Below are positions 26,521 to 63,773 of a DNA stretch of 64,000 bases, one piece after another. The notes below the pieces were generated by a model. It had not been told where the DNA came from, ran no database searches, and saw nothing but the letters and a program-made list of their open reading frames with translations. The translations under genes and the position numbers were made by a program. Each line of letters opens with the position of its first letter. Position 1 is the first letter of the stretch. This stretch comes from Hamiltosporidium tvaerminnensis FI-OER-3-3 (taxonomy: Eukaryota > Fungi > Microsporidia): the NCBI GenBank assembly GCA_022605425.2, contig CM061255.1, positions 310,001 through 374,000 of the forward strand, read 5' to 3'.

Positions 26521-28770
26521 TAAGTTTTTAATAAAAAAACATATTTTTTACAGAAAGATTTCTGTTTTTACATTCTGTAAATAAATTCTTAGGGATTAAG
26601 TTAAAGAAAACGATCTTTATTCAAAGAATCATAATTTTTTTTTATACTTATAAATAACAATAGCGTATTTTCATTTTATTATATGTGAATTCACCCCTTA
26701 AGTCTCTTATTTTGATCTTATATACGAGTCTTCAGTGTATTTCGATAAGATATTCAATACCATATGTTTTATAGATGACCTCTTTTTTTGTTAGTTATGC
26801 TTTTTATATTGAATAAATTAAAAAAAAATATATTATATTTTTTTAGTTTTTGTAAAAGTATGCCAGTTCGGTCACCGTGAGAAAAACAGCGGAGAATTAA
26901 TAATCTAGACCCGTGAAAAATAATTTCAAAAGGAATATATTTAGTAAAATTACCAGATATGTATCGGAAAGTAAGAGAAGACGAGGTTAACATCGAAAAA
27001 GATGTCTAAATAATATGGTAAAGTATCTAATAACTCATTGTGTGGCAAAGGGGAAATACAACGCGCAGTAGGGAAAAACGAAGAATAAATTTAAACAAAA
27101 CTTAGTTCTTCAAGATCCTAAAGTGCTGCGTTTTTTAGTAAAAAATATGCCACGTTCGCACTAAGAATAACATAACTGAAACTTCATATGAATATTAGTT
27201 GAATACTATTATGATTTTATATGTGTAACATCATCTATGTAAATTCAAAACCATTGCTTGCACCGCAGTTGATTCTTATTTAATACTTTGAATAAATATT
27301 TTAACTTATATAATTGCTAAAGAAACCAGAAGAACTCTAGTTAGAAATTTAGATTACCCTACTTTAATTGATTATAATAGTTTTATATAAAAACATTAGA
27401 GATATATTTGATTACAACTGTTTTGAATTAAATAGACAAATATGTTTTAAACGCTTAAATAAAATAATTTTTGTTACTAATCCTATTTCAAAATGGAATA
27501 ATTTTTTTATCAGACATTTGATTGTCTTGTAGTTACATTAACTCTATATCTTTACCGTAATATGATGGAGGCTAAAATACATTTTAAAACCCTCAAAATT
27601 TAATCTAGTATATTCTACAGCAAAGTATCTCAAAATGAAATTTTATTTTCAATTATTTTACGCACGATATTTTCTTGCAATTCAGAAGATCTTTAATTAG
27701 ATCGTAAAATATATGTTTTATAAATAAATTCCAATTTATTTATTCAAAAAGTAATTAATATCATAAGAAATTTTTCTTAACCATTAGTTTAACCATTTTA
27801 TAAGATAATGTATAGGTTCTTATTCTTGTTATATTTACACATTAGATCTTTAGAACTCCGGAAAATTATAAAAATATAAGTGATACGATATCATTCGTGT
27901 TCAATGAAAGTTTGAATATATTGTTTAAAAAATAAAGCCATCTAAAATTGTATTTATTTGCCATCCGCCAACTTTTAGTAATAAATAATTCATTAATGGA
28001 TATTTTTATTCCTAAAAAGAATATCTCGCAAGTTTTTTTAATTTTGTTAGAACTTAAAGACTTCAATCTTCCAAGGCTCATACAATATATATGTATGTTT
28101 ACTGTTTAAAATAAATACAATCTTTATTTATTAACATTCTTGATGATATTAGACATTTCCATTCCATTGACTGCAAACTCTGAAGTATTGATTAAAATAT
28201 ACGTAAATGAAAATTTTAATACCACTGTAGAAAATATTTGAACTTGATAGATTTAAAAACTTTAATTAACTAAATTTTTTTTTCAAAAGTATGTATCTAA
28301 AATTTAAATTTTTTCTTTTAATACTTTTACACATTATTTTTGTCTTCTAAACCCGACTCACCTTCTATGTTTTTTCAAAGGATTTTTTCGAATGGTCACT
28401 GCAGTTAAAACCAACGTTAAGCTATTTTACCTATTTCCCAAAATCTTCTTTGTTTCTTGGTTCTCAGGAATGAAATATTGGTTTTTAATGTCTTTAAAGT
28501 ACATGCATAAGCTTCATTTATGTTTCATCTTAGCACTTTAATAATTTAAACTAATATAAGACATACGTATCGATCAAAATAAATTATTTCGACGTTCTTT
28601 AAATAATATAGTGATTATTTTTATGTATTATATTTATGGGTAATTAAGCTTTAAGATTTATCTAATAATATTTTGCTCAGGCTGTCGCAAATTTTCGGAT
28701 AAGAAATTATCGAACTCCAAACCTATAAATAAGATTTATTTGATCAAAATACTCCTTACTTCTTTAGTTT

Positions 28771-29120
28771 ATTTTTAGTTCGAACTATTTAAAGTACAAA
28801 TGTTTATATTATTTTTAGTTCGAACTATTTAAAGTACAAATGTTTATATTATTTTAGTTCGAACTATTTAAAGTACAAATGTTTATATTATTTTTAGTTC
28901 GAACTATTTAAAGTACAAATGTTTATATTATTTTTAGTTCGAACTATTTAAAGTACAAATGTTTATATTATTTTTAGTTCGAACTATTTAAAGTACAAAT
29001 GTTTATATTATTTTTAGTTCGAACTATTTAAAGTACAAATGTTTATATTATTTTTAGTTCGAACTATTTAAAGTACAAATGTTTATATTATTTTAGTTCG
29101 AACTATTTAAAGTACAAATT
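28771..29120. repeat. 40-bp minisatellite, ~9 near-identical copies, each with the 12-bp palindrome TAGTTCGAACTA
   Basis: Unit ATTTTTAGTTCGAACTATTTAAAGTACAAATGTTTATATT; two units are 1 T shorter; no spacers. Confidence 0.97.
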
Positions 29121-31835
29121 TTTCATAATTCTTTTACTTTAAAAAGTGAAATTTTATTTTTGCTCGATCTAAAATAAATTTATAAGATTCATTGTTCTAC
29201 AGGTTAACATAAACTTGTTTCTTGATATCCAATTTTAATCCACACACTTATGTATCGAGAAATTCTCGAACCGAGTGATTCCCAATTTATTTTTTAAGAC
29301 CGGAACTTCTTTACATTCCAGAATAATAAGTATAGACTTCTAAAAACTGCCTTATGCAGTCATATTTATTCATCTTTAAGCAATTTTGCATATACTTGCT
29401 AAATGCTATATTTTTTTACTTTGCTGATTATCGTAATGATATTTTCCTTCGCACTTCTAATAAAGTTCTACCTTTAATTTTTACATCATTGGAACTGATT
29501 CAAATCTGTTTTATTTGTGTAAATTAATTCTAAAAAAATAGTGATTAAATTTTTGTGGCAATCCTAATGTATAACCTTTACAAAAAAATTATATCAAATT
29601 TAATCTATCATAAACATCATGAGCTTGTATTATCTTCATTTGAAAAAACTATAACAATCAGCCTAGTTTAGAATATTTCTAGTTTAGAAATAAAGTAATA
29701 TTTGCCAAAATTGTGATTGTAATCGATTAGAAGAAGAAATAATGGTTGTTAAAGAGGTAGAAGGAAATTTATAAACATCTACAAAAATTTTAACCAGAAT
29801 TTATTAAATAAAGAAAATTGTAATTGATTATTTGTTGTAAATTTAGAAGATTGCTGATTCTGTATTAGGCGTGAAAACATAATATAAAAACATAGCAGTA
29901 AATTAAAAATGCGTTGCTTTTACACTTAACTTATAAAAAATTTACACAAATAAATTTCACTAATGTTCATAGCAATGGTTACTCTATAAACAACCTAAAA
30001 TAAATTTATTTTTTTGAATCTTTGAATTAATAGTATTAAGCAATTGCATTTTTTAAATTGATATAAAAGCATTGGTGTATTTAGTCAACGTGATCACACC
30101 GATTTTATATTATACTCTTGTATGACATACTTATTACAATCTTTTATCTAAAAAAATCTATGTAAAGATAGTTCTTTATAGAGTTAGGTTTTATATTCTA
30201 ATCAAGTAACAATAATATCTAGTATAAACAAAAAGATTGAAACGGCAGTATAAATATCGATTTGCATGCACCAAAGAAAGTAAAAAATTTAATAATTTTA
30301 AACAAATCGAAACCAAATATATAATATTCTTTCGAACAATTTATTATAAAGTTTTAGAGTTATATGCTTTGAAAAGATCAAAATAGAAATAATCTGATAA
30401 TAAAAAAACAAATTAAAAATTTCAAATCTAACTAGAAGCCTTTCCGAAAATGTAAAGGTGACCTTCGATAATAAATTCAAAAGAATAGAAAAAGTTAGTC
30501 ACAGAAGAAAAAATATTAGAGATAAACAGAAATAAAATCAACATATTCGCCTATAATGTATCATTTGGTTTTCGTATTTTCCAAAACCATAAAATATAAA
30601 TATATATATTCAAAGCAATAAAAAAAACGCATTTGTTTTAATATTAGAAAAATGAATTGTATAAGAAGTAAAAGTTTGTTTGAAAGCTAACGTAACGAGA
30701 GTAAAAGTACCAATTAAATGTTTAAAAGATATTTTACAAAAAAGATTTCTTCAATATTGAAAATTTTAAGGTAGTTTATTTTTTATGATGTAAAAACAAT
30801 AGCAATTTTAATGAATTTCTTAAAATTATTTGTAGAAACAGTGTTTAAAGGTTTCTAGAATAGACCCTAGGAAGATGTTAGAAACTGTATTAATATAGCA
30901 ATATAGATCTTAATTATTTAAGCGACTAAAATCAATGCAAATGCCGAAATTTGAACAAGATCATTATATTGTTTAGAAAAAAACATTTTTTTAATATTTA
31001 TGATATATCAATATCATTCTAAATAAATTTGATTAAAAAAAGATCTTTTGATATTTTTGACATGATAAAATACTTTTTTAATTTATAAAAAAATTCTTAA
31101 CCGTTGTATGTTCGAAGGAAAAACCTGGAAATAGAAAAACAATTTTTTTAAATAGAACATCTTCTTGGAGTTAAATATTAACGAATGTGATATTTATATA
31201 CACAAAGAAAAATTTGATGTTTAGTATTTTTTCTTTTTTAGATATATGATTCGTTAGTAGAGAATGGGTAAGAAAAGAAATTTGAAATAATTTAACATAT
31301 TTAGAATTCTTTATATTAGAAATAAGTTGATTGATTGATTTTATTTTTTATTGGTGTTATATTCTCTAAATATTTTTAAAAAAATTGATTTGGTGTTAAA
31401 ATTACTGTGAAAATTATTTTTTTCGTATATAAAGGATGTTATTTATAGAACTGTTTACCCCAAATCATATGAGAATTAAAATGTCAATAGAAAACACTAA
31501 GAATGAGACAAATCAACCAGAAATTACAATTGCATGTAACCGTAGAAATCAAGTTGATCTAATCAAATTGATCTACAAACGTACTTTCGAATCATTAACT
31601 TAGTTGTTAATTCACGTGATTTAGATCAATGATCAAATCGATATGGTGTTCTAGTTACTTTGACATGTTCAAGTAACAAATTGGTGTTACATATGGTTAC
31701 TGCTCTGATGCAGATTTTGGAGGTTTTCCGTTGTTACTTTGGTTTCTTGTGCTGCTTTATTCATCGGGATTAAGTTATGGACTCAACGAGTCAATTGTGT
31801 GTGATTTGGATGTGACGTGTAATGGTATATTTGTG

Positions 31836-33140
31836 CAACAGGTTGATTCTGCCTGACGAGGATGCTTGTCTCTGGGATTAAGCCATGCAAGTCTGGTGAA
31901 GCGAAAGTGGAACTGCGAACGGCTCAGTAGAACGGTGATTATTTAATCGTGTAGGAAGGATAACCGCGGGAAACTGTGGCTAATAACACGAGTAAGACGC
32001 CGACCCATCAGTTTTATCGTACGGTAAGGGCGTACGATGGCTTTAACGGGTACGGGGGATCAGGGTTTGATTCCGGAGAGGGAGCCTGAGAAACGGCTAC
32101 CAGGTCTAAGGACAGCAGCAGGCGCGAAACTTGCCCAATTGGAGAGAGGCAGTTATGAGACGTATATTTTGTAACCGGGGTAGAATACCGGTGATTGACT
32201 GGAGGGCAAGTCTGGTGCCAGCAGCCGCGGTAATTCCAGCTCCAGGAGTGTCATAGTGCATTGCTGCATTTAAAAGGTCCGTAGTCAGTGTTGACAGGGA
32301 TGCTAGAAGACACTTTCTTCATGGAGTGTATTGGCATTCTAGGTTAGCATGTAGGAGCGGAAGAGGGCGACTGTATTGCGTAGCGAGAGGTGAAAGTTGA
32401 CGACCTACGTAGGACAAACCGAAGCGAAAGCTGTCGTCCAGTACGTTTCCGGTGATCAAGGACGTAAGCCGGAGGAGCAAAGGTGATTAGAGACCCCTGT
32501 AGTTCCGGCCGTAAACTATGCCAACTGGGTGTTACGTAGTGGTACCCACGAGAAATCAAGTATATGGGCTATGGGGATAGTACGATCGCAAGATTGAAAC
32601 TTGAAGAAATTGACGGAAGGACACCACCAGGAGTGGAGTGTGCGGCTTAATTTGACTCAACGCGGGACAACTTACCAGGGCCAGTTGTATGACGAATCTT
32701 TGATGAGTACGACTAAGTGGTGCATGGCCGTTCACAACATGTGAGGTGACTTTTAGGTTTATTGCTGTAATGTGTGAGACCCTCAGCTACGGCGACTGGG
32801 GACTATAAGTTTCAGGAAGGAGGGGGCTATAACAGGTCTGTGATGCCCTTAGATGTTCTGGGCTGCACGCGCACTACAATGTTATTTCTAGAGGTATATT
32901 GTAAAGATAAAGGATAACTCGGTTGGGATTGCGTTCTGTAATGGACGCATGAACCAGGAATTCCTAGTAGTCGCGTGTCACTAACGGGCGACGACTGCGT
33001 CCCTGTTCTTTGTACACACCGCCCGTCGTTATCTAAGATGGTGCTATGTTCGAAGAGGGTTTTCCTTCTGAGGACGTAGGATTAGATTGGATACAAGTCG
33101 TAACAAGGTTGCTGTAGGAGAACCTGCAGCAGGATCAGTG
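31836..33140 (+). rRNA. Small-subunit (16S-like) rRNA, microsporidian type
   Basis: CAGGTTGATTCTGCCTGAC start, GTGCCAGCAGCCGCGGTAAT, GAAATTGACGGAAGG, TGTACACACCGCCCGTC and AAGTCGTAACAAGG...GGATCA end; ~1.3 kb. Confidence 0.98.
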
Positions 33141-33174: not shown

Positions 33175-34847
33175 ACTCATACAAGGGATCACTTGGCTCC
33201 GTATCCGAGGAAGGCCGGAATAGTTTCCGAGAACTAAGGCCGAACGGCATTTGTAAATGCCTGACTACCCCCTGGACTTAAGCATATTATTAAGGGGAGG
33301 AACAAAAACTAACTAGGATTTCTGTAGTAGCGGCGAGCGAACAAGAAATAGCCCCGAATGTAAGCCTCCGGGCATTGTTAAGATCGTCGTAACGAATTAC
33401 CGGGACAGGTAAGCCATAGAGGGTGATAGCCCCGTAGTGACGAGTAATGGGCAGAGTAGGGTTGCTTGGTAATGCAGCCTGAAGAGGTGGTGGGTTCCAT
33501 CTAAGGCTAAATATGAGCGGAGACCGATAGCGTAATAGTACAGCGATGGAAAGGTGAAAAGCTAAAAAGTGCAAAGACGTGAAATTGTATTGAGTATCCT
33601 GATAACAGGACCCGTCTTGAAACACGGACCAAGGAGTGCATCTGCATAGCAAGTTAAAGGGGGGTTTCCTTTAAGCGTAGCGAAAGCAGATATAGCTGTT
33701 CGGATGCGACCCGAAGGGCTGTGAACTACACCTGGCCAGGTTGAAGCCATTCGAAAGGATGGTGGAGGACCTAAACTTGTTCTGACGCGCAAATCGATGG
33801 TTTGAGCTGGGTGTAGGGGCGAAAGACCAATCGAACAGCCGGGTAGCTGGTTCCCATCGAAATGTCTCTCAGGACAGCAGACACAAGTTATTTAGTATTA
33901 TGCGGTAGAGGAACGGCGGGATGAAAGGGGAGCAATCTCCACATACCGACGAACTGCGAACGTGTACGTGTTATTCTTGTACTAAAGAATAGCGATTATA
34001 TATGTGTCTAGTGGGCGCGTTCTGGTAAGCAGGACGTGCGAAGAGGGATCAACCTGACGTACTGATAAGGGGCCTAATCTGGTTTTTCTTAAGGCCGTAG
34101 ATGAATTGTGACAGTAGGGCGGTGGCCATGGAGGTTGGCATCCGGTAAGAAACGTGTTGCAACGTACCTACCGAATTCATGTGCGCCGAAAATGGACGGT
34201 ACAAGGCCAGACCCGATGCAGTACTTATAGGTAGATGGGCGTGGTGTATGTGCAGAAGGTTTACCGTGAGGTAAAGTGGAGCATACACTAGTGCTGATCT
34301 TGGTGGTAGTAGTTACAATTCGTGTGTGAATCGCGAAGGCTTCAGGAGAAGGGTTCTTCTAAGATTTAATAAGGAGAAGGTTAGCCGGTCCTGAGATCTC
34401 GACAGGGAATCGGGTTGATATTCCCGAGCCATCTAGGTATTTGGCAACAGTAAATATGGTGTTTACGTCTTAGGCACGACAACAAGGAGGTACCCATTCC
34501 TTGTAGCAGTACTGTATGTAGCGTGTTGTACAGAGCAATACAGGCATATGCAATTGTCTTAGCTGGGATCCGTGAAAAGATACCTTTATGACCTAGATGA
34601 CCGTACCGACCGCAGCAGGGCTCCGTACGGTGTATACCGGAAGCGATAGGACAAACGTTAGTTAGGGAATTCGGCAAATTAGATCCGTAACCTCGGGAAA
34701 AGGATTAGCTCTAAGGAATTAGAACTTTTAGTTACGGGGAATCCGACTGTTTAATAAAAACATAGCTTTGTGGTGGTGTAGTACGTGGACACAAAGTGAA
34801 TTCTGCCCAGTGCCCAGCTGTTAAGACAGGTCGGGCTGTATACGCAG

Positions 34848-34901
<54 letters not shown>

Positions 34902-34998
34902 CCTAATTAGTGACGCGCACGAAAGGAGCAACGAGATTCCCACTGTCCCGACTAACAACCTGCGAACCCACGAGCCAAGGGAACGGTCTTGGCTATGC

Positions 34999-35035
<37 letters not shown>

Positions 35036-35311
35036 GTGACGCCGGGGTCTTGTGCAGCTGTAGCAAGGTGGGGCAACTGAAAGACCACTAGCTGTGCAAG
35101 CGACCCGTATTTGTCAGATGGGGAGTTTGACTGGGGCGGTACATCTGCTAGACTACAACGCAGATGGCCTAAGGGTGGCTAACTTCGGAGAGAAACCGAG
35201 GGTGTAGTCCAAGGGCAAAAGCCACCCTGACGTATTACTACACGGTAATACGAGGGGAAACCCAGGCCTAGCGATCCCATTGCTTACAGAGCATCTAGCA
35301 ATGGGTGACGT

Positions 35312-35343
<32 letters not shown>

Positions 35344-35447
35344 AGCCGAGCGACCATAGCGACGCTGCTTTTTGATTCTTCGATGTCGGCTCTTCCTATC
35401 ATGGTGCAGCAGAAGGCACCTAGTGTTGGATTGTTCACCCACTAACA

Positions 35448-35485
<38 letters not shown>

Positions 35486-35731
35486 TAGTTTTACACTACT
35501 GCTACGGTACTAAGGGAGCAGATGCTAGTACGAAAGGAACGAATCTGCAGGACCTCTTGTCGTGCCTATATCTGGTAAGGTACGGGCTAAGCAACGTCCT
35601 GGCACGGAAGAGCTGAAGGCCTCTAAGCTTCAACGTGGCCCTACTGTACTATCTAGCATGAAGACGACGTGCTTGGGTGCTGCAGCTGTAATCCACAAGA
35701 TCGCGAGTGGATGAGGCTAGCAAGCACTCAT
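33175..35731 (+). rRNA. Large-subunit rRNA with covalently fused 5.8S (no ITS2)
   Basis: 5.8S motif GGATCACTTGGCTC runs straight into ACCCCCTGGACTTAAGCATAT. Also GACCCGTCTTGAAACACGGACCAAGGAG, CTCTTAAGGTAGCCAAATGCC and the sarcin-ricin loop AGTACGAAAGGAAC. Terminal helix TGGGTGCT (35674-35681) pairs with AGCACTCA (35723-35730). Confidence 0.97.
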
Positions 35732-35789
35732 GACGAGAGATGATCACCACCTCCACGTGGTTCTCGTTGGGTAACGCCAAGAGTGATCA
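35732..35789 (+). ncRNA. Minimal HDV-like self-cleaving ribozyme abutting the LSU 3' end
   Basis: P1 GACGAGA/UCUCGUU with G1-U wobble; P2 UGAUCAC-C/G-(A)-GUGAUCA; P3 ACC/GGU; L3 UCCACGU; P1.1 CC/GG; J4/2 GCCAA with putative catalytic C at 35777; P4 reduced to GUAAC. Confidence 0.88.
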
Positions 35790-37349
35790 AACATCAAAAA
35801 AAATATAAAGGATTAAAAACTAAAAAAACTAAAAAAAAAGTAAACAAAAAAATGATTTCAAAAAAAATTCAAATAGGATAAATATAACGAAAGAAACATT
35901 TTATCACCTTACAAAATTAGGATCTAAGCAAAAACGCATTTGCTTTTTTTACATAATCTATTTGTGTGACATTTAAATAATTTCCACTAATTCTACTTAT
36001 AAGAACACATACCAGATATGTTTTAAAATATCACTTTTTAAAGATTAGAGTCTTTATGTATGCTTGGATATCTCATTACCAATTTGATTTTTAAATACAT
36101 TTCTTCCTTTATATAAGCAAAAACTATTTTAAAAGACAGCATCGAGATTTCTAATTGAGAAAAATTTAGTATCATATCTATTATTTTTTTCATATGCTTC
36201 AAAGTTTTCAATATTTTTAAACTAAGACATGTACTGTAATGTAATATTTTGCCTACCTTTATATATTATTTTATCAGAAACGTAAATTTTTTAATATTCA
36301 CAAATTGTTTTTCATAAAAAAATTAAAGGAATGTTCGAATAACGATAATTTTTTACTTTAACGAATCATATATATTTCCATTAATTTCATATGCTAGAAA
36401 GATTGAAAATTATAACGGTCTAATAGACTACATATTAAATATCCAAATCTGTTAAAATACCATATATAACATCAAAATTTAAATTTATAAAAATATATAA
36501 ATCACGGAATTAATGTATTCATGTTTAGAATATTAAAATGGCCAAGGATCTTAACCTTTTAATCATTTGAATTATAAATTCAAAAAAAAGAATATATTTG
36601 TCAATCTTAGATAACATATAAATAAAAAAAATAATAAATATATGGACATACATTGCTGTAAAACATAATTTATGTACACATTATAGAAAAAATTTCTTAA
36701 CTAGCATCTCTTTGTTCAAATAAAAGATAGACGACGATGCGCGAAAATACTTTAAAGGATATATAAAAAATTTTAACAAAAAAACTTTATGAGATGAATA
36801 AAACAATATACTAGTGGCTTTATTTATTGAACATTAACTAAAATTTGAGATTTTTCTATAGCGTTATAATAATATATTTGCTAAGTTTTGAATTATGAAT
36901 ATAACTGCACAGAAAAGAAAAAGCAAAATATAGAGGCATATTTGCCAATAATAATTTACTCAAAAAAATAATGGTAGATTTAATAATTCAAATGTTTAAA
37001 ATAGATAGACAAGCATCATTTATAAAATTCTAAAATTTTAATTTTTGGATCTCAAATCAGTATCAAGCATAAATTTCTGTTTGGTAATGAATAAAAAATT
37101 TTTTGTTAACCATTGAAAAATTGGATTTTTAAGTTATCACTTAACGGATCTAATATTAAGAAAATTTAGAAAAACAAATATATTAAAATAAAAGAATGAA
37201 TTGAGTGAAATTTTTGTATTATATAAAAATAATAGATTCTTGGCACTACAGAGTTACCAAATTACATTAAAAAGAAATATATACCAGAAATATAAAATTA
37301 ATTCAATAGATTGAACAAAGACAATAAAAATATAAGGTAGATAATAAGC

Positions 37350-37407
37350 GACGAGAGATGATCACCACCTCCACGTGGTTCTCGTTGGGTAACGCTAAGT
37401 GTGATCA
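37350..37407 (+). ncRNA. Minimal HDV-like ribozyme forming the 5' end of the element
   Basis: 56/58 identical to 35732-35789. J4/2 GCUAA with catalytic C at 37395. G1 directly follows the TSD. Confidence 0.9.
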
Positions 37408-38057
37408 AGCAAAACCCCCTTACGGTTTTATGTTACGACGGAATGTACTATAGTTTTACGTGGCGTTAAGCGCCGTTCCAACGGGAACAGCAAGTTGCTC
37501 AATCGGTGAGCATATTTCTTCTGGGGCGATACAAAGAGGTAAATGCGACTGCGACGCAACGAGATTCTCGGTTTACCTAGGCACTTGTCGATGCTAAAAC
37601 CCTTACTTTAACATCAAGATGAGTCTACCTGAATGTGATTGGATCGAAGATTCCATTAGGAATCAAATTGTGTTTGAAATCTTCTTATACTAAGGAAAAG
37701 AAAGGTATAAAAAGTGCTCTTGGAAGGGGAGTGGCAAGCTGCTGGGCTGCAGCAAATTTGTTCGGCACAGTTAAAGACTTAACAAATCAGAAATGATATG
37801 TTGAAGACTTGACGTGCCGGACGTTAATGTGTAAGTGTGGGATTTTAGGGATTTTTATGTGACCTTCTAGAACCGAAGTCCAAATGTGGATATGGTGGCT
37901 GTACACAGCCGGGTCGGTTTTATTGGATTTTTGTTTTTGAGTGTGGTGCATGGTATGGAAATGAATAGCTTAGTTTCCCTTTAAAAACAATACAACGAGT
38001 AGTGCTGAAAACTTTTTATCAATAAAGCCGAATTTTATTTATTTATTTATTTTATTT
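37350..38057 (+). mobile_element. 708-bp non-autonomous, internally deleted LINE derivative with 5' HDV-like ribozyme
   Basis: 15-bp TSD AGGTAGATAATAAGC at 37335-37349 and 38058-38072. (TTTA)n-like tail. Segment TGTTTGAAATCTT...GTGCTCTTGGAAGGGGAGTGGCAAGC (~37672-37739) is homologous to the LINE ORF2 C-terminus at ~47233-47309. Confidence 0.9.
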
Positions 38058-41000
38058 AGGTAGATAATAAGCAAAAGTATTAAATTATAATGATTGAAGT
38101 TTATGCATAATGGTTCAAAAGTTCTATTTTTATCAAAAAAATTAAATTTGAATATGAATTTTAAGTTAGCACAATTCTAAAAATTATGAAAATATACAAT
38201 AATTGAATGATTATACCCTTTTGTCAATAGTAAAAAACCTATTGGATTATCTTTATAAAAATATAGCAAGCAGACAACATGATTTGTCACAAGGAATGCA
38301 TATTTCCTATAATATAATGGGTTTTAAATTGATCTTAGAACAATATATTTTTAATGTTATATTATATAATTTAAAAATCTTAAAAATCCTTATATTTATA
38401 TGAATTTTATGGTAATTAATGCCAAAATGATAAAATAATATTAAGAGATATTAAAATTGGTTTTAAAATGATTAACATATAGTAATATGACTATAAATTA
38501 ATCCAAAAATTTTGTTTTAGTTCAATTAACGGAAAAATTCATAAATATAAACGAAATAAAAAAGACTTTACAACATATATATTTATTAAATCGCGTCACA
38601 GTATATGAACAGCAATTGTTTAAATCGTTTCACAACAGCTAACAACTTATTAAGTAAACCACAATCTTTTATCCCGTAAAAATTGATTTAAGTCGTTTAA
38701 TGAATGTTTCTTAAAACAGAAATTTTTCCAATCAAAATAGTCGTTAAACCATACATAACCTCCTCTTTTTTTTAATTTCGATGAGCTTTATTAATGTTAA
38801 TGCTGCAATATTCTGCAAGAATAAAATAATACACACAATTTTAATCTATATCTTTAATTTTTATGTACTGTTCATACTAAAACTTGACTAAAACTAGTTA
38901 TAATTACAATTTTTAAAGAAAATAAAAATCCACATGCATAGGGAATATGAAGTAAAAACTAAATAAACCGTAAATATACAAACCAGAATTATATAAATTA
39001 TCTTGAGTGAAATTTATTTGAAATTAACGTCTTTAACTATAGAATGAATGTTACTTTTCTTAAATTTACCATTTGCTGAAGTATTTAAATAATAGGTTTT
39101 CGAAATCATAATGGAAGCGTCTATTCCATAAAAAAATATAGAAAACTGCAAATGTAATTATAAAATGTTTCGTAAAATTTTGTTTTGTAATTTATATTGG
39201 TTTTCTATTCAACTTCCATTGAAGCTTACAATTAAATGACCATGATGTGTAGAACCCTATTAAAAAAAACGTACAAAGTATTGTAAGTACAATATAAAAC
39301 CAAATTTCACGTTTCGGTTTGAATAAAAATAATTATAAATAATTTAAGAAGAGGTTAGTTAATGTCTAATTATTTTATATCCAAGAGAAAAAAATTTTGT
39401 TTTATCAAAATAATAAATACGGAAACAATTTTTTCAGAATAAAATAAAGGTATAAAAAATTTAAAACAATAAAGAATTAGAAGAACATTAACAATTTATT
39501 AAAATTTATGCTAATATTTCATGGTCTAAAACGAAAAATTTTTATTTCGTTAATCATAATAATTTTATACTTCAACTAGCAGTAAAGAAGTAAATCACTG
39601 ACTGAAATTTTATAAATTAGAATCGAATTTTCTTCTTTATAAAGTAAGAATAAGATATATTTTCTCTTTAATTTAAAAAAGTTTTTGTGATCTAAATTCA
39701 CTTTGGAATGCCGTTTTTACCAATATTTAAAACACATTCCCAATCATAGCATAAATAAATTGTAACAGAAACCAATAAAGATGACTTATATGCGCCTTGT
39801 ATTAATCAGATATCAGATCGAAAAAGACGGATATTCCGAGATATTAAAAACAAAAAACAATTCAAAATATACAACTTTAAAATTAATAATTTTATAAACA
39901 AAAAGAAATATTTTAATATAAATGTCGTATATTAAGGCTTTTAAAGCCGTTAATAACTAACCAACTATTGTACATTCATCATGGTGTAATTTATCTTATT
40001 CTAACGTATAAGTTTGACATATATACCACAATTTTCAAGGTTTAAAGCCGTATTTCAGGGTGAGAATATTCCTGTACCCTTCTCAAATATATAAAAAATG
40101 AACATTTTAATCAAAGTAAAACAACTGTCTAGCCTATGATTAAGCCATAAAACGGAACATTTTTACTTTAGCATAACTGCATTCAAACTTTATTTATGTT
40201 ACATTCTTTATATTCACTATATATTCGAAATTTTTTTATAAAATTAAAATATAAGAGTAATAAAGGATGGTGTTATTTTATCTATAAATTACATAGATAT
40301 GATCACAATATATAAAAACAAAATATCTTATAGAAAAAAAGTTTTGAGTTGAAATCGAAGGGGCTGAATAGTCAGATAGAAAAATTCTTGTAGATAATAA
40401 TCCTACTGTTTACTTATATACGAAATATACGATCGTGTATATATTATACTACATTTTAATAAAATATCCGAAAACTTTTTTAATTTTGTATATTTGGCAG
40501 TTGTTTATATAAAAGTTATTTGATCTTGTTACAATGTCAGGCTAATAAAATCAATAATTTTGTGAGATTATAGTGTAATTTTGGGTTTTTCACATGTTAG
40601 GTTCTATGTGCATTTAAAAATAACAAGGCGACCGTGTTTCTTTATATAGTACTAGTCATCGGAACGAGATGATTTGATTTGTAAAAAAGGCTTTTAACTA
40701 GATATATTCTCATGTGTGTTAGTTGCACAAGTAATTAAATCTAACATTGTTAAATTAAAAAAGAAGACGTGTGATACCTACTCTATTATGCTATTATCTC
40801 AAAATTTAATCCCTTCATGTTCGATATAATTCTTTCATAGAACAAGATCAAAATATTTAATTTATATTGTGAGCAGTTTCGCATTAGTCAACCAATATCA
40901 TGTGTTATATCATTTTTAAGCATTAGAATTTATAATATAACCAGAGGGCTTTATAATTTTCTTACATTACATGGATTTTTAGTTAATTTCTTGCTTGGCT

Positions 41001-42424
41001 TTTCTAAAGTTCCAAAAAAGAAATATACTATTAATACGTTAAAGTAAAAAAGATTTTTCTGCTCTATTCATTTTTTTGGTCTTTTATGTGATATTTTAAG
41101 CGAGACCTATGATAGAATAACCATTTTGAAACAGCGTCCAGGAATATTCTTTAACTGAATACCTGTTCTTAAATAGCCCCAAAGATAAGTTTATAGTAAA
41201 CGCGAGGATGGTGTAAAACGTATCATAAACGCCTTTTTATTGTATTATTTTTCTCTGCATAAAGTTTTTCTGTAATACCAGAATTTTTTTGATTTTCAAC
41301 TTCAAAGAAATTCAGATTATTTTAAAGATATATGATTCACTAAGATAATGTAGGTCAGCGTTAGTAACTATTATCTCATGCAAATAATATGTATATTATT
41401 AGATATAATATAAATCAATTACATCGTTTTGTAATTTAAAAAATGGAACTCTCTTATATCCTTAATGAGATTCAGAAAACTAAAAGGATTTTCTTTAAAA
41501 AATATATTTTTCTTTAGATTTTTGTTAATCCTAAAACCAGTTTAAATAACCCAGATAATTTAAAAATTTGTTTTTTTAATGGTGTATATGAAAGATTTAT
41601 ATCTTACAGTCCTAAATGTTTTTTATAATTTTGACTAGTTCTAATCTTTTCGAAACGCAGTAATTGTTAAAACAGATTTGAAAAACATTTTTACGACTAA
41701 CATTTTTCTTTAAATACGTTTTTTACTACAAAAATATAATAGATTTATATTTTAAATTCTTGCATTTTATACAATCATCCTTAGGGTTATATATCTGTTA
41801 AATGTTTATTATATTTGTAAGTAATATATTTATTAGATGGAATATAAATACAAGAATAGAAAGAAAAGCACCAAGCACTCAATAAAGTGAGCAAAGAAAT
41901 GTACAAAAAAATTTAAGCAAAATTTAGATGGTAAATATAGATAGGCATACTTGATATTTTTCTCCATATATTCTGTATTTAGATATAATAAACTAAAAAT
42001 ATTTTTAGTATAATAAGAATAAAAAAGAAAAATGCAGGTATACGATCAGAAGAAATAATAAAATAAGAAAATTTTAAAATTTTCTTTTGAAAATAAATCC
42101 GGGAGTAAAAATATATTTATAAATCGAGAAATAGAAACCAAATGTATGACGACTATTGTGTTGTAAGGCGCCCATGGGCAAAAGAAAAATATCGGGAGCG
42201 GTTGAAAATCGCAAAAAATCAAGATGTGAGAATACGGGTGTGAAGAGTAGGAATTTCGACGACTTTGTTTCCAGCTCATCGAGGACTAGCCACCCTCGAG
42301 TTGTGAGCCCAATCGACTGTTTTTTTCGGCGTCTTCGAAACAGGAGGAGTGTGCGGCAGCCACGCACAAGGAGAGTAAAAAGTGTACAGATAATAGGAAT
42401 GTAAAGAGTTTTTTTGGGACAAGC

Positions 42425-43723
42425 ATGCCAAAGCACACACGGGATGTGCCGCTGACCAGCCAGCGAAGTTTCCCGGAGGAGAAAGAGGCACAGACTTTGT
42501 CTGTTCTTTATGCACTTGCTTCTAAGAAAATAACACTACTTGAAAAAAGAGTGGAAAAATTAGAAGAAGAGGAAAAGAGATATAAAAAAACTCTTATGTT
42601 GGCAAAGACCAACTCGATTGCTTTATGGGTACACTTTAAAGGAATTGAGAAGCTACGTAAAGTACCTAAAAGGTCGCGTAGGTGCCGTACTCACAAGTAC
42701 ATGATAACGGCTGTAGCACCTGTTTCCTTGGTTAGGCTAGAGGCAGGAGCCAGAGACCCTCAGGCTAATCCAGCAGCCAGTGAGTTAGTCTGCAATGCTG
42801 CAGAACTAACAGAGAAACCACTCGAGCAGAATTTGGTGGTAAATGAGGCGAAATCTCAGTCTTTCGGGCCAACTTTGGCTGCACGATCTGCATTGGCAAA
42901 AGCTCGATCTTTGGTTAAACAGATCGTGTTAAGGACAGGCATTTTTACTGATCTGACTGCAAATGCTGTTGACTCTCTTGCTGCTGGAATCTGCCCAGTG
43001 GAAGTGCAGATCTGCAACGCAGCAGAATCTCAAGGCTTACAAGCTGAACGTGCAATGAATGTAAGTCATCAAGGGGCAAGGCCTGTTGAATGTGGTACGG
43101 GCAATACCACACTGCCTCCGATAGCAACTCCTCGTTCTATCGAAAAAAATTTACCTGAAAAGACTTCCGTAAGTGCTTCGGGAAAAGGTCTTAAGGATAA
43201 AAATAAGGAATTATTTGAGAGCAAAGCAACTGGTAACCCAGCCAGTAAACCGAGAGCCGTCAAATTGCAGACTGCTAAAAAGCCTTCCTTCGATCGTACT
43301 AAGGCACCTTCGAAGCAGAGTAGAGGGAAAATTAACCTAAACAGAGCACAGTGTGAGGATGTTGTGCAAGGCAAATCACCATTTGTCTTGAATAGGTTTG
43401 TGCTCCTTTACTTAGTTGGAGTTAAAGTGAACAAACCCGCTTATTTAAGAGCAGTCTTGGAGAATGGGGGCGTTTAATCTCACTATGTAAAGCACGTAGG
43501 CTTCACTAAAGAAGGCCTGTTAGAGTTGCTTGTTAATGCTAACAGTGTGGATAAAGTTAAAGCCATTTTTACAGGTTTTAAAGGTGTTAAGACGTTTGAT
43601 AATTATCTTAACAAAGGCAGTTTCGAAGAGATTGGAGAGCGGTTATCTGAACTTAAGCGCAGACTCTCATGGGTCGAGCGATTTAAAGATAACCCGCCGG
43701 TTAGGAGGTTCCTTAGATTATGA
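42425..43723 (+). pseudogene. LINE ORF1-like reading frame with premature stop
   Basis: ORFs 42425-43477 and 43526-43723 are in the same frame, separated by one TAA. Coiled-coil-like LEKRVEKLEEEEKR. Confidence 0.65.
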
Positions 43724-44143
43724 AGCATATTTGCGCTCGGAATGCCTCTCAAGAAGCCTCGAAAATCTTCTACGGATTAGAAGATGTGGTACTTGAGGAG
43801 CCAAAGAGCTCCTCTAGCCTATAGTCAGGACTGTCAGAACTGTTGACACCTGCCAATAGATATAGCCGTGCAAAGCAGGTCCCGCGGTATACTCTGTCTG
43901 GGGTGTACCGCATAGGCATCGTAGTGTTTTTGCTAAAACACTAGAGACGAGAGGATACAAAGGTAAGCCTGTCAAGCGAGTTATACAGCGAGATGGACGT
44001 AAACGACTTGATGTGACTGTTGAGAGTGGGATAGACCCGGAAACAGTGCAAGCTGTGAGTAGGAAACATCTTGGGTACTGCAAAACCCATACACTAGGGA
44101 GAAAAAAGCTGTCAGAATTTGCACGGAATCGTATAGTAATCTT

Positions 44144-47100
44144 AGATTACTTACGCTGAATGTAAATTCCTTTGGATCAAAACGAGAGGAGGTTCTAATG
44201 CTGCCCGGTAAACTCCACCCAGACATTCTATGTCTCCAAGAGACATTACGCTACACAAGGAATTCTCGGAACGTTATTCCGGGATACGAGGTATTTGAAA
44301 GCTTTGCCAAAAAGGAGGAAAAAGATGGTAGAGGACTGATTTTAGCTGTGCGTCGTAAGTTAGATCTTACGTTATCTTCAGTTGAAGTACATCCTAACTT
44401 CTTAGCTGGAATTGTTTGTGGCAAAAAAGCGACTGGTGGCTAGTTAATAATGCTTGTTGTTAACGTGTACATTCCTCCGAAATGTTCACTATATGGCAAC
44501 AGAGCGAAAACGCTCGAAGCTCTAGGATCTTTTCTTGTTAGTAAAAACAAGAAAAACGGTTTGGATGATATTCTAGTCATGGGCGACTGGAATATGACTC
44601 CAGAAGAGGCTGCTAGGTTCCTGGCTGTCAACAACCTCTATTGCACGAATAAATGGTTATTCGAAGCACCGCGAGCTACACGTGCAGCAGCACACGGCGC
44701 CAATAGATGCATTGACTCTGCCTGTATCCGAAAAGAGAGTGGCGGAGGTAGTTGAGGTGCAAAGGAAATGGGATATCTCGGTTCACCTTCCTGCTACTGT
44801 TGACGTTAGGGTGGACACGCTCACACGAGCTGTACGCAAGAAAGCGCTCTTTTTACGCAAGTTTGTGGAGCAGTCACTTGCTGAAAAGCTTATAAGCTGT
44901 CCGACCTGGAACAGTTTCGGTCACAATACGGATCTTGGGATTTATGTTGCAGAAACTGTTAAAGAAGTAGTAAAAAAGTTAGGTCTTGAAGGTACTTTTT
45001 CAGATGGAAATAGTCTTTTTTTGCCTCGGAAGCTTAAAAAATCTATTAAATATAAACGGAGAGTTGCTCCCGAAATGAGAGCCAGCCGAGCTCATCCGAA
45101 CGCCTATGCTGTCCTCAAACGAAAGTGCGAGGAAATGAAGCGTCTATATAGGCGGCAGCTGAGAATAAAGTGGGCGCGAAAAGGTATTGTGGCGGCAACA
45201 AACCGCTGCATGAGAGACGTGTGGCAGTGGACGAGGAGGTCTGCTGGAATGCCCAAATTCTCGGCTGCCAATCGCACGGTTTTGGATGAAAAAGGCCAAA
45301 TTGCTTCGGATGAGACGACAGTGTTGCAGGTCTGGTACAACCACTTTCGTTCCTTAGCAACAATGAATGATGAGTTACAGAGCAAAGACACTTAAATGGA
45401 GTGTCTTATTGAAGATAACGGAACTCATTAGAATCATTTGATTGCTGTGCAAGAGGTTATTTCAGCGCTGCACAAGTCAGCAAGCAACAAAGCATGTGGT
45501 ATAGATGAGGTAACAGTAGAAGCGTACAAAGCTCTACTAATGGATACTCATGGCGTAAGTCTGATGGATTAGCAGATTTTACATGTGCTGAATGACGCCT
45601 GGACAAATAGAATACCTGACAGCTGGAGAGTGTCAGTCATAGTACCGGTACCGAAGAAAGGTGATTTACGAAAGCCTGGAAACTACCGCGGAATATGTCT
45701 GATTAACACCTTTCTTAAACTGCTGTGTAAGGTTGTGGAACGCCGAATGCGTTTGTATGTTGAGAATAATAACCTCTTGTGCCGGGAACAAGCTGGTTTT
45801 CGTACTCGAGAGGAATGTGTTGCTCAGGTGGCAACTCTTTTGGAAATTCAAAGGAGAAGATTCATTCGAGGTAGAGAGACAGTTTGCCTATTTATCGATT
45901 TCGAAAAGGCTTACGATAGAGTTCCTAATGATCTACTCCTCTTGAGACTAAAAGACAAGGCTATTCTGGAAAACTTCTGAGATTCCTTAAAGATCTGTAG
46001 ACTGATCTCCAGGTTGGTGTTAAATTAGGCGATAAAACAACAAGCCTATTCCCATATAATATCGGTCTGCGCCAAGGCTGTCCGTTATCACCACTGTTAT
46101 TCGATCTTTTTATCGATGAAATTTTTAGAGGTGTTAACGGTATAACATGCGAGGGTCTTAATTATAGGGTTCCGGGTCTGTTGTTTGCCGATGACACTGT
46201 CCTGTTCGGTGATGATGTGGCTGCCGTACAACTCAGTATGGATAGATCATGAGGTGGTGTAATACCTGGGGAACGCGTATTAATATAGATAAGTGTAGGT
46301 TGTTACTTCCTCCAGGTCTTACAGGTAACGTAAGGATAGGTGAAAAAGCAGTCCCGGTGGTCGAAACCTACAGATACTTAGGCATTGTTTTGAACCGCAC
46401 GTTTTCTCTAAAAGAAATGCTCAATGGGAGAAAAAAAGCTGTGTTTGCGGTCCGAAAAATGCTATGCCATTCCTCTGAAGGTCAGAAGTTCTGCTTTACT
46501 TTAAACTTCTGATCATAAAGCATGCATTATACCAATTGTAATGTATGGGAGCGAATTGTGGGGAATGAGCAAGGTCAGAATAGTATCTGTAGGTTGCGGC
46601 GTTACACGTTCTTTGGCAGCAGCTTTTGGATGCGAGAGAATTTTGCCCAGCTGGCAGTTTTCAGAGAGTGTGAGATCCAGCCTTCATATGAAAAGGTAGC
46701 TATGTCACGTGTAAGAGGCTTCTTGAAATCGCAAGAAAGCAGAACGATCATCCGGGACTTGCTAAATGGTAAGTTTACAGCAGGAAGAGAACGTGAGTTA
46801 CTCAAAACCGAATCTGGAAGAAAGCTTATACTGGAAGTCCTTTATCGGGTTTGAGTAACAAAAAGAATGGCCCGTAAATTAAAGAGACTATTGTTAAAAG
46901 GCAAGACCGAGCCGATAAGTCAGTTATAGGTGGCTTACGTAAAAACTTCGGTCTTAATAGTTGATATAAGTGGATATAAGTGGATCTACGCAGAGCTAAA
47001 TAACAGGGTGTTAGCTAGAAGTATGAGGATACTGCGTAGATTCAGAATAGGACTGGTTAAATTTAGTCCGCAACTGGCAGCTTTAGGAAGTTTGCCGATT

Positions 47101-47322
47101 AGGTATAGGGAACGCTGTCTATGTTGCGAGGAACCAGTCCGAGAAACTGTAAGCCATCTAGTGTTCGTGTATAAGAGGTGGAAAGTGGAGCGATGGATGT
47201 TTACGGCTCAGGTTACGAGAAGAGTTGTAAAATGTTTGAAATCTTTTGATGCTGTGGGGAATTTAGGATTGAAAGCGTTAGGAGTGCTCTTGGAAAGGGA
47301 GTGGCAAGCGCCGCAGTTCTAA
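44144..47322 (+). pseudogene. LINE ORF2 (AP endonuclease + reverse transcriptase + CCHC-like), multiple stops and frameshifts
   Basis: APE motifs LLTLNVNS, DILCLQET, VNVYIPP, VMGDWN, RCID, ISVHLP. RT motifs KACGID, NYRGICLI, EQAGFR, FIDFEKAYDRV, GLRQGCPLSPLLF, LFADD, YRYLG. Knuckle CLCCEEPVRETVSHLVF. Confidence 0.93.
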
Positions 47323-58200: not shown

Positions 58201-61026
58201 GTTTTATTGGGTCAAAGGCCTGAACTTCTCTCAATATAAATTAAATATTTAGATTTTTGCTGGATTATAGAGTTATATAAAATCAAGAGGTATCATTATA
58301 TGTTAATTCAGCAATTCCGATTAAGATAATAAAAGAGTTCTGCAGGCGAATACTACTGCTGTCTAAAAAGATTGTCAACGTGTCTAACACTCATGAGAAT
58401 ATATCTGGTTTGAAGCTATTTTTACAAATCAAATCATCTCGTTCCGATGACTAGTACTATATAAAGAAACACGGTCGCCTTGTTATTTTTAAATGCACAT
58501 AGAACCTAACATGTGAAAAACCCAAAATTACACTATAATCTCACAAAATTATTGATTTTATTAGCCTGACATTGTAACAAGATCAAATAACTTTTATATA
58601 AACAACTGCCAAATATACAAAATTAAAAAAGTTTTCGGATATTTTATTAAAATGTAGTATAATATATACACGATCGTATATTTCGTATATAAGTAAACAG
58701 TAGGATTATTATCTACAAGAATTTTTCTATCTGACTATTCAGCCCCTTCGATTTCAACCAAAACTATTTATTCTATAAGATATTTTGCTTTTATATATTG
58801 TGATCATATCTATGTAATTTATAGATAAAATAACACCATCCATAATTACTCTTATATTTTAATTTTATAAAAAAATTTCGAATATATAGTGAATATAAAG
58901 AATGTAACATAAATAAAGTTTGAATGCAGTTATGCTAAAGTAAAAATGTTCCGTTTTATGGCTTAATCATAGGCTAGACAGTTGTTTTACTTCGATTAAA
59001 ATGTTCATTTTTTATATATTTGAGAAGGTACAGGAATATTCTCACCATGAAATACGGCTTTAAACCTTGAAAATTGTGGTATATATGTAAACTTATACGT
59101 TAGAATAAGATAAATTACACCATGATGAATGTACAATATTTAGTTATTAAGGGCTTTATAGCCTTAATATACGACATTTATATTAAAATATTTTTTTTTG
59201 TTTATAAAATTATTAATTTTAAAGTTGTATATTTTGAATTGTTTTTTGTTCTTAATATCTCGGAATATCCGTCTTTTTCGATCTGATATCTGATTAATAC
59301 AAGGCGCATATAAGTCATCTTTATTGGTTTCTGTTACAATTTATTTATGCTATGATTGGGAATGTGTTTTAAATTTTGGTAAAAACGGCATTCCAAAGTG
59401 AATTTAGATCACAAAAACTTTTTTAAATTAAAGAGAAAATATATCTTATTCTTACTTTATAAAGAAGAAAATTCGATTCTAATTTATAAAATTTCAGTCA
59501 GTGATTTACTTCTTTACTGCTAGTTGAAGTATAAAATTATTATGATTAACGAAATAAAAATTTTTCGTTTTTGACCATGTAATATTTTATAAATTGTTAA
59601 TGTTCTTCTAATTCTTTATTGTTTTAAATTTTTTATACCTTTATTTTATTCTGAAAAAATTGTTTCCGTATTTATTATTTTGATGAAACAAAATTTTTTT
59701 CGCTTGGATATAATATAATAGACATTTACTAACCTATTCTTAAATTATTTATAATTATTATTATTATTCAAACCGAAACGTGAAATTTGGTTTTATATTG
59801 TACTTACAATACTTTGTACGTTTTTTTTAATAGGGTTCTACACATCATGGTCATTTAATTGTAAGCTTCAATGGAAGTTGAATAGAAAACCAATATAAAT
59901 TACAAAACAAAATTTTACGAAACATTTTATAATTACATTTGCAGTTTTCTATATTTTTTTTATGGAATAAACGATTCCATTATGATTCAAAAACCTATTA
60001 TTTAAATACTTCAGCTACTGGTAAATTTAAGAAAAGCAACATTCATTTTATAGTTAAAGACGTTTATTTCTAATATATTTGATTTGAAATATTTTATATA
60101 ATTCTGGTTTGTATATATTTACGGTTTATTTAGCTTGTACTTCATATTCCTTATGCATGTTGATTTATATTTTTGTAAAAATTTGTAATTTAACTAACTT
60201 TATTCAAGTTTTAGTATGAATATCACATAAAAATTAAAGATATAGATTAAAAATTGTGTGTATTATTTTATTCTTGCAGAATATTGCAGAATTAACATTA
60301 ATAAAGCTCATCGAAGTTAAAAAAAGAGGAGGTTATATATGGGTTAACATCTATTTAGATTGGAAAAATTTTCTGTTTTAAGAAACATTCACACAATGAC
60401 TTAAATTCGAATGTAGTGGAATAAAAGATTGTGGTTTACGCAAAAAATTGCTACCAGTTGTGAAATGATTAAAACAGTGGCTGTTCATATACTGTGACGC
60501 GATTTAATAAATATATATGTTGTAAAGTCTTTTTTATTTCGTTTATATTTATGAATTTTTCCGTTAATTGAACTAAAACAAAATTTTTGGATTAATTTAT
60601 AGTCATATTACTATATGTTAATCATTTTAAAACCAATTTTAATATCTCTTAATATTATTTTATCATTTTGGCATTAATTACCATAAAATTCATATAAATA
60701 TAAGGATTTTTAAATTATATAATATAACATTAAAAATATATTGTTCTAAGATCAATTTAAAACCCATTATATTATAGGAAATATGCATTCCTTGTGACAA
60801 ATCATGTTGTCTGCTTGCTATATTTTTATAAAGATAATCCAATAGGTTTTTTACTATTGACAAAAGGGTATAATCATTCAATTATTGTATATTTTCATAA
60901 TTTTTAGAATTGTGCTAACTTAAAATTCATATTCAAATTTAATTTTTTTGATAAAAATAGAACTTTTGAACCATTATGCATAAACTTCAATCATTATAAT
61001 TTAATACTTTTGCTTATTATCTACCT

Positions 61027-63295: not shown

Positions 63296-63353
63296 TGATC
63301 ACTCTTGGCGTTATCCAACGAGAACCACGTGGAGGTGGTGATCATCTCTCGTC
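63296..63353 (-). ncRNA. Minimal HDV-like ribozyme abutting the 3' end of the second LSU
   Basis: Reverse complement of 35732-35789 except G40 to A (window 63314), just after P1.1. Confidence 0.87.
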
Positions 63354-63599
63354 ATGAGTGCTTGCTAGCCTCATCCACTCGCGATCTTGTGGATTACAGC
63401 TGCAGCACCCAAGCACGTCGTCTTCATGCTAGATAGTACAGTAGGGCCACGTTGAAGCTTAGAGGCCTTCAGCTCTTCCGTGCCAGGACGTTGCTTAGCC
63501 CGTACCTTACCAGATATAGGCACGACAAGAGGTCCTGCAGATTCGTTCCTTTCGTACTAGCATCTGCTCCCTTAGTACCGTAGCAGTAGTGTAAAACTA

Positions 63600-63637
<38 letters not shown>

Positions 63638-63741: not shown

Positions 63742-63773
<32 letters not shown>

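Follow-up and report, generated by a model that had tools for sequence, protein, structure and literature searches.

A 708-bp non-autonomous retroelement with a predicted minimal HDV-like ribozyme at its 5' end in the rDNA spacers of the microsporidian Hamiltosporidium tvaerminnensis

The genome of the microsporidian Hamiltosporidium tvaerminnensis carries, downstream of its ribosomal RNA (rRNA) operons, a 708-bp retroelement whose first base coincides with the predicted cleavage site of a ribozyme resembling that of hepatitis delta virus (HDV). The element was analyzed in a 64,000-nucleotide stretch of strain FI-OER-3-3 (GenBank assembly GCA_022605425.2, contig CM061255.1), referred to below as the window and equivalent to C10:310001-374000. 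Positions are window coordinates unless prefixed by a contig (C1, C2, C4, C13, C14 or C17), and genome-wide results cover the 21,638,905-bp, 17-contig assembly. In the window, a plus-strand ribosomal DNA (rDNA) unit comprises a small-subunit (SSU) gene at 31836-33140 and a large-subunit (LSU) gene at 33245-35733. The end of a second LSU gene, on the minus strand at 63352-64000, faces this unit, and downstream of both units lies an inverted repeat (35085-40722 versus 58384-64000) with up to 99-100% identity. Ten rRNA operons were previously reported to lie in five places, tail to tail, around specific long interspersed nuclear element (LINE) repeats found mostly there (Genome Biol Evol 2025, PMC12449221). 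Five tail-to-tail rDNA pairs with enclosed LINEs were recovered independently here, in agreement with the passages of that paper that deal with rDNA and rRNA. The same passages mention neither a ribozyme nor a non-autonomous element, the paper as a whole not having been searched for the word 'ribozyme'.

The element lies between the plus-strand LSU gene and the nearest LINE copy and is composed as follows:

37335-37349, plus strand: left target-site duplication (TSD), repeated exactly at 38058-38072 (chance expectation 0)
37350-37407, plus strand: predicted minimal (P4-less) HDV-like ribozyme, with G1 at 37350 and the putative catalytic C at 37395, recognized by Rfam models, pairing and a descriptor
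37408-37670, plus strand: element-specific 5' body (approximately nt 59-321 of the element), GC-richer than its surroundings and matching only element copies
37671-37760, plus strand: frameshifted remnant of the last codons of open reading frame 2 (ORF2) of a LINE, CLKSS...VLLEGEWQAAGLQQ, identified by tblastn and DNA identity
37826-37961, plus strand: 3' untranslated region (UTR) domain in common with the LINE, stem-loop forming, ~78-83% identical
38031-38057, plus strand: 3' end with (TTTA)n tail, ATTTTATTTATTTATTTATTTTATTT, which is also the end motif of the LINE
38058-38072, plus strand: right TSD, an exact repeat of 37335-37349

The initial annotation, made from the sequence of the window, had described a non-autonomous retroelement bracketed by a perfect 15-bp TSD, starting at G1 of a ribozyme and ending in a (TTTA)n-like tail. 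Each part of this description holds. The 15-mer AGGTAGATAATAAGC occurs exactly at 37335-37349 and 38058-38072 and encloses 708 bp (37350-38057), both Rfam HDV models place the cleavage-site G on 37350, and the tail is present. Moreover, the longest ORF spans 53 amino acids and the insertion bears the marks of target-primed reverse transcription. The element is a non-autonomous non-LTR (long terminal repeat) retroelement, real and correctly delimited. No DNA or peptide match to its body (nt 58-321) was found genome-wide beyond six element copies. The body has no similarity to the LINE and contains no tRNA, and no Rfam family except HDV is found in the element. It folds no better than shuffled sequences (z-score −0.74), while the 3' 318 nt of the element reach z = −2.48. 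Classical short interspersed nuclear elements carry a head derived from tRNA, 7SL or 5S RNA with a Pol III promoter; here there is no tRNA and the only Rfam match is HDV. A scan for sigma-70 promoters gave a result equal to that in shuffles, the bacterial model being irrelevant to a eukaryote.

A genome search combined with inspection of the flanks revealed four insertions of the element, at different positions of one paralogous spacer downstream of LSU genes. A motif closely related to the ribozyme of the element also follows each LSU gene, and distances below run from G1 of this rDNA ribozyme to G1 of the element:

C10 copy (37350): 1618 bp; 5' end at G1; TSD AGGTAGATAATAAGC, 15 bp
C17 copy, in both arms: 776 bp; 5' end at G1; TSD ATATACAATCATAGA, 15 bp
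C1:1233k copy: 474 bp; 5' end at G1; no recognizable TSD, tail adjoining a truncated LINE fragment
C14:914k copy: ~540 bp; 5' end too decayed to place; no recognizable TSD
61012-61749, minus strand (element 61027-61734): second window copy including its duplications, 100% identical to the first and with the same 15-mer, in the other arm of the inverted repeat
36495-36508, plus strand: empty paralogous site of the C17 insertion in the window spacer

The C10, C1 and C17 copies are 97-99% identical among themselves. In line with the expectation of the initial annotation that other copies would begin at G1 and be flanked by different TSDs, the C17 copy starts at G1 within its own 15-bp repeat and the C1 copy, at yet another site, likewise begins with G1. 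Random 5' ends, or copies extending upstream of G1, had been named as evidence to the contrary; such evidence did not arise, no copy in the genome extending upstream of G1. Empty sites with a single copy of the target, which the annotation had suggested looking for in other strains, do occur in the paralogous rDNA flanks of this genome. The C10 site is unoccupied in all other loci, with the C14 arms holding a single AAGTAGATAATAAGC, and in DNA sequencing run X1 a contig end with an empty C10-type site is also present. In addition, 5'-truncated fragments of the element, typical of target-primed reverse transcription, are found in a C1 spacer (185 bp) and on C2.

The copy at 61012-61749 is the product of segmental duplication and not of a new insertion, as shown by its location in an inverted repeat whose arms are 99% identical. 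We considered whether all copies might have arisen in this way, by duplication of rDNA flanks and with no retrotransposition. The two window copies and the two C17 copies are indeed such duplicates, with identical TSDs in inverted arms. On the other hand, the C10, C17, C1 and C14 copies occupy four positions of the paralogous spacer, each of which is vacant in the remaining loci, and two of the copies (C10 and C17) are flanked by 15-bp duplications of their own. The different sites and the empty paralogs exclude an origin by segmental duplication alone, to which we attach virtually no probability.

All four long copies are sense-oriented and are located 474-1618 bp (0.5-1.6 kb) downstream of an LSU gene. 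The same orientation is seen in a young LINE copy, in the 185-bp fragment and in the LINE fragments of the spacers. The ten spacers of this kind together account for ~0.1% of the genome, a figure that favors local or targeted insertion; short fragments outside the rDNA loci, on C2, C4 and C17, indicate that this targeting is strong, not absolute. The position and orientation of the copies would fit co-transcription with rRNA followed by release by the ribozyme.

Further observations concern the insertion sites. Across paralogs, 36090-36520 is a 400-bp insertion hot spot in which all inserts are sense to the rDNA; in window-equivalent positions, these are a LINE at 36111, elements at 36208, ~36271 and ~36500, the 185-bp fragment at 36267 and LINE fragments at ~36360. 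The element copy at C14:914049-914640 (minus strand) lacks ~115 bases, 66 of which are T, and shows 0 insertions and 4 substitutions. Its deletions form a gradient, with none in the 3' 220 nt and a very high density at the 5' end, which is either an assembly artefact or the product of very error-prone reverse transcription. At C1:1232252-1233533 (minus strand), the (TTTA)n tail of the element directly adjoins a 5'-truncated 620-bp LINE 3' fragment, the two being joined without intervening spacer; the insertion lacks a duplication, and ~150 bp of target are missing. This junction looks like a template jump in one insertion, or like two nested events.

The 5' end of the element was compared with known ribozymes using Rfam covariance models. 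RF00094 (HDV_ribozyme) scores 26.3 bits (E 0.17; gathering cut-off 50) and RF02682 (HDV-F-prausnitzii) 25.7 bits (E 0.019 at the element; gathering cut-off 44). Both models align end to end, over 37348/37350-37406/37408, with 37350 as the cleavage-site G. Where one model has a P4 segment of 30 positions and the other one of 15, the element has a single base, and it is because this helix is missing that the scores stay under the gathering cut-offs. The absence of P4 places the motif in the 'minimal' subclass, which by definition has no P4 (10.1101/2023.06.13.544163). In the predicted fold, P1 pairs positions 1-7 with 31-37 (7 bp, closed by a G1-U37 wobble), P2 pairs 10-16 with 52-58, P3 pairs 18-20 with 28-30 (3 bp), and P1.1 pairs C22-C23 with G38-G39. 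The junction G45-C46-U47-A48-A49 corresponds to the catalytic GCNAA (GCuAA in the models), C46 being the J4/2 cytosine, and C46, A48 and A49 are unchanged in 15/15 ribozyme copies. Pairing is possible at 19/19 pairs of P1, P2, P3 and P1.1 and is standard in every variant, versus 30-53% when the partners are slid. Variation is confined to positions 40, 44, 47 and 51 and to position 60, which lies shortly past the 3' end of the fold; none of these falls in a helix or on C46, and 5 variable sites would all miss the 39 core positions with a probability of C(22,5)/C(61,5) = 0.004. Genome-wide, RF02682 returns 15 matches at E ≤ 10, all of which are this motif (10 rDNA copies and 5 element copies), with scores of 25.7-27.3 bits and a best E of 0.048 for 21.6 Mb. 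RF00094 returns nothing genome-wide at E ≤ 10. In the window, a generic HDV-like descriptor matches the 4 ribozyme copies and nothing else, with 0 matches in 30 dinucleotide shuffles of the 64 kb; as it was written after the sequence had been seen, this result is supportive only.

The rDNA copies of the motif are located as follows in the window:

35732-35789, plus strand: rDNA-flank ribozyme, 95% identical to that of the element, directly after the LSU 3' end and followed by AT-rich spacer, not by the element body
63296-63353, minus strand: rDNA-flank ribozyme of the facing unit, same motif

The remaining ones are found on C1 (four), C14 (two) and C17 (two), and in 10/10 LSU genes the P4-less HDV-like ribozyme starts one base past the predicted 3' end. 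These ten copies are the only relatives of the element ribozyme in the genome, and homology between the element and the rDNA flanks trails off a few bases beyond P2. When the ten rDNA units are compared, variable columns number 8/300 at the LSU end, 1/57 in the ribozyme and 29/58 just downstream, such that the edge of conservation falls exactly at the ribozyme 3' end. The LSU-flank ribozyme is a candidate for a self-cleaving RNA that would generate the LSU 3' end.

These data bear on two other accounts of the 5' end. According to the first, the likeness of the motif to HDV arose by chance, and some other process fixes the 5' end of what is an ordinary short element dependent on a LINE, as the scores below the Rfam gathering cut-offs and the lack of compensatory changes might suggest. 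We regard this as highly improbable, given the complete set of 19 pairs, the presence of a G-U wobble, of P1.1 pairing and of a C-N-A-A junction, the lack of descriptor matches in shuffled sequences, the identity of the top 15 genome-wide matches and an rDNA conservation edge exactly at the end of the motif. According to the second, G1 marks transcription initiation at an internal promoter, and the HDV-like fold is incidental or secondary. The two roles can coincide, since the first 77 nt of L1Tc/NARTc are promoter and ribozyme at once (PMC3383444). Nevertheless, the boundary equals, to the base, the cleavage site predicted by two covariance models, all features of the catalytic core are kept, and the same motif occurs at the point where cleavage would generate the LSU 3' end, at which a promoter would make no sense. 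Initiation at an internal promoter is therefore improbable. Self-cleavage 5' of G1 in vivo, on the other hand, is suggested by the fold together with three independent insertion boundaries (C10, C17 and C1), and three independent insertions starting at the predicted cut site are about the best that sequence alone can give for such cleavage.

As to the origin of the motif, one tentative scenario is that the ribozyme is at home in the rDNA, where it would make the LSU 3' end, and that the element was born when a LINE reverse transcriptase copied an RNA starting at the cut. If this were true, a mobile element and an rRNA operon of its host would have exchanged a working ribozyme, yielding a family that lives off rDNA read-through. 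The reverse direction, domestication of a retroelement ribozyme for rRNA 3'-end formation, would be equally new. When the ORF that runs across the LSU end and the ribozyme was used as a protein query, no relatives were identified, and an exact scan of metagenome contigs with the ribozyme core gave no match. Contigs of H. magnivora and of an earlier H. tvaerminnensis assembly, reached via the LINE proteins, cover only the old LINE copy of the window and no rDNA flank. Upstream of the plus-strand unit, ~2.7 kb from the SSU gene, a tandem array of 40-bp units occupies 28693-29171.

The LINE family found between the rDNA units encodes an apurinic/apyrimidinic endonuclease (APE) and a reverse transcriptase (RT) and comprises seven long copies, all within the five rDNA pairs:

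42174-47309, plus strand: old broken copy in the window, with many ORFs and without a 3' UTR and tail of its own
C1:586483-591925: young copy
C1:620406-625328, C1:597272, C1:1212306, C17:614347 and C14:894373: other long copies

In each locus, one of these copies occupies a paralogous position ~6 kb downstream of one rDNA unit and is also present in H. magnivora. The ortholog of the window copy in that species is 90% identical, flank included, and the window copy must hence be old. The young copy at C1:586483-591925 starts 366 bp from the G1 of an rDNA ribozyme. It possesses a TSD of ~16 bp, a complete 3' UTR with (TTTA)n tail and one stop in ORF2, and its 550-amino-acid ORF1 begins (ATG) at the first base of the insertion, with no 5' UTR. 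Its twin in the other arm has an uninterrupted ORF2 frame of 1195 codons with APE and RT domains. RVT_1 and Exo_endo_phos are the only Pfam families detected in the LINE, ORF1 matching none, and the nearest solved relatives of ORF2 are the L1 ORF2p and R2 proteins. LINE 3' fragments on C4 and C17, outside the rDNA, have TSDs of 16 and ~26 bp.

The similarity of the element to the ORF2 C-terminus, which had been attributed to the LINE at 42-47 kb, is real but short. Nt 322-411 match ORF2 amino acids 1139-1169 (tblastn to the uninterrupted frame), with 93-100% identity at the DNA level over 44-56 nt relative to the younger C1 LINE copies. Nt 477-612 match the LINE 3'-UTR domain, and the terminal motif CCGAATTTTATTTA... 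is common to the element and the LINE. An APE- and RT-encoding LINE thus shares its 3' end with the element. The window copy itself was rejected as the source of this end, being old, broken, devoid of a 3' UTR and orthologous in H. magnivora. The consensus fold of the 3'-UTR domain shows a few compensatory changes across LINE families. A 3'-UTR domain of ~80 nt (TTCTAGAACC...GGTCGGTTT) is also conserved in the tails of other repeat families at 63-82% identity (C13:360.2k and C2:701.2k) and may serve the reverse transcriptases of several LINE lineages as a shared handle.

Rfam detects no ribozyme at the LINE 5' end in 41600-42500, the descriptor finds no further site in the window, and both the ribozyme and nt 58-321 of the element are absent from 7/7 long copies. 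A full-length LINE sharing both ends, as the initial annotation had predicted, did not turn up among these seven, and its view of the element as an internally deleted LINE is accordingly unproven, a hybrid origin being at least as likely. The absence of any LINE with the ribozyme or nt 58-321, and the restriction of ribozyme relatives to LSU ends, argue for a hybrid rather than for plain internal deletion. The element is best described as a hybrid resembling a short internally deleted element (SIDE), in which a ribozyme of rDNA type forms the head, an orphan sequence the body and a LINE end the tail. A SIDE in the strict sense takes both ends from one full-length LINE, and within this genome the two ends of the element are not found together in any.

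It is nevertheless possible, if doubtful, that the element is a plain SIDE derived from a lost ribozyme-headed LINE and that the LSU-flank ribozymes are leftovers of insertions of that LINE. Its layout can be read as ribozyme, 5' UTR, ATG at 37619, junction, ORF2 end and 3' UTR, the ~17-22% difference of its 3' UTR from the extant LINE is as expected from a sister subfamily, and several LINE clades are headed by HDV-like ribozymes (PMC3185411, PMC3414825). However, no LINE copy in the 21.6-Mb assembly carries the ribozyme or nt 58-321, and the 24-codon ORF at 37619 matches no ORF1. Furthermore, target-primed insertion leaves 3' ends and not isolated 5' heads, so that ribozyme-only remnants at ten LSU ends would need later deletion, followed by homogenization.

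We propose that the element is a low-copy, two-module retroelement, released by its ribozyme and mobilized by a LINE from the rDNA spacer, and assign this explanation as a whole a probability of about 0.75. In this model, copies lying in sense orientation downstream of the LSU gene would be transcribed within a longer RNA, most simply by rDNA read-through, and the ribozyme would cut 5' of G1, yielding an element RNA that begins with G1. The LINE ORF2 protein, the probable partner, would recognize the common 3' end in trans and nick AT-rich DNA. Reverse transcription would then proceed to the very first base of the RNA, leaving the ~15-bp duplication seen among the insertion marks, and new copies would again land in spacer downstream of rDNA. 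Such a cycle would offer a mechanism for the clustering of LINEs between paired rRNA operons described in the rDNA passages of the published account (PMC12449221).

Several points weigh against this proposal. The ribozyme scores under both Rfam gathering cut-offs, and its pairs never vary among copies, so covariation cannot be assessed. The C14 copy is too decayed at its 5' end for a sure placement at G1, and the preference for rDNA spacers is incomplete, as the fragments on C2, C4 and C17 illustrate. Nt 412-476 and ~613-683 have no LINE counterpart, and the 3' UTR of the element is only ~78-83% identical to that of the extant LINE; given this divergence and the unmatched stretches, the helper could be another, unseen subfamily. 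Finally, cleavage, co-transcription and the RNA 3' end lack support from RNA: three RNA runs labeled with another organism, probably the host, yielded no usable reads of H. tvaerminnensis (0, 0 and 5 partial reads on 35600-38150).

Drosophila offers the closest known parallel to the proposed model in its R2 SIDEs and R2/R1 hybrid SIDEs (Eickbush and Eickbush 2012, PMC3414825). Like the element, R2 SIDEs are short and non-coding, join a 5' HDV-like ribozyme to a LINE 3' end and reside in rDNA loci; their 5' end is generated by self-cleavage of a co-transcript and they are mobilized in trans, as proposed here. In the R2/R1 hybrid SIDEs, which have TSDs of 14 bp, the ribozyme and the 3' end come from different sources, as in the element. 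In contrast to R2 SIDEs, the presumed helper is an APE-type LINE with no extant copy carrying the ribozyme, the ribozyme is P4-less and has relatives only flanking the rRNA gene, and the host is a microsporidian. Moreover, R2 SIDEs occupy one site inside the 28S gene, whereas variable AT-rich sites in the LSU-downstream spacer are used here. R2-type elements are likewise defined by a fixed site in the rRNA gene and a restriction-like endonuclease, instead of which we found variable spacer sites and an APE domain.

A second parallel is provided by L1Tc/NARTc and the Pr77 sequence of the trypanosomatid ingi clade, with which the element shares a non-autonomous nature, an HDV-like ribozyme head and, presumably, a dependence on an APE- and RT-encoding LINE (PMC3185411, PMC3383444, PMC4035085). 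NARTc has its 5' head in common with its autonomous partner, while the partner of the element lacks it. Pr77 is also a promoter, and the head of the element is compared with it as a ribozyme only. The L1Tc/NARTc families are high-copy and dispersed, as opposed to four known insertions, all beside rDNA, for the element.

The ribozyme itself has the P1, P1.1, P2, P3 and J4/2 cytosine of the minimal HDV-like ribozymes and, like these, no P4 (bioRxiv 10.1101/2023.06.13.544163), its activity being a prediction. Minimal forms are described from metagenomes and gut phages, and the initial motif searches of that preprint reportedly recovered them solely from phage genomes assembled out of human gut metagenomes (10.1101/2023.06.13.544163). 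Unlike those phage ribozymes, the present one belongs to the nuclear genome of a eukaryote, where it adjoins rRNA and heads a retroelement. The theta ribozymes next to phage tRNA genes have G1 at the 3' end of the upstream structural RNA, as do the rDNA copies here.

Our literature search yielded no report of a ribozyme-headed LINE parasite from microsporidia or other fungi and no paper joining 'HDV-like ribozyme' with microsporidia; papers retrieved with 'self-cleaving ribozyme' and 'microsporidia' were off-subject as judged by title or abstract. The rDNA copies raise the questions whether a self-cleaving RNA finishes the large rRNA of a eukaryote, and whether the ribozyme was borrowed by a mobile element or donated by it. 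The design of the element, known from the rDNA of Drosophila among insects and from trypanosomatids, appears to be new in microsporidia.

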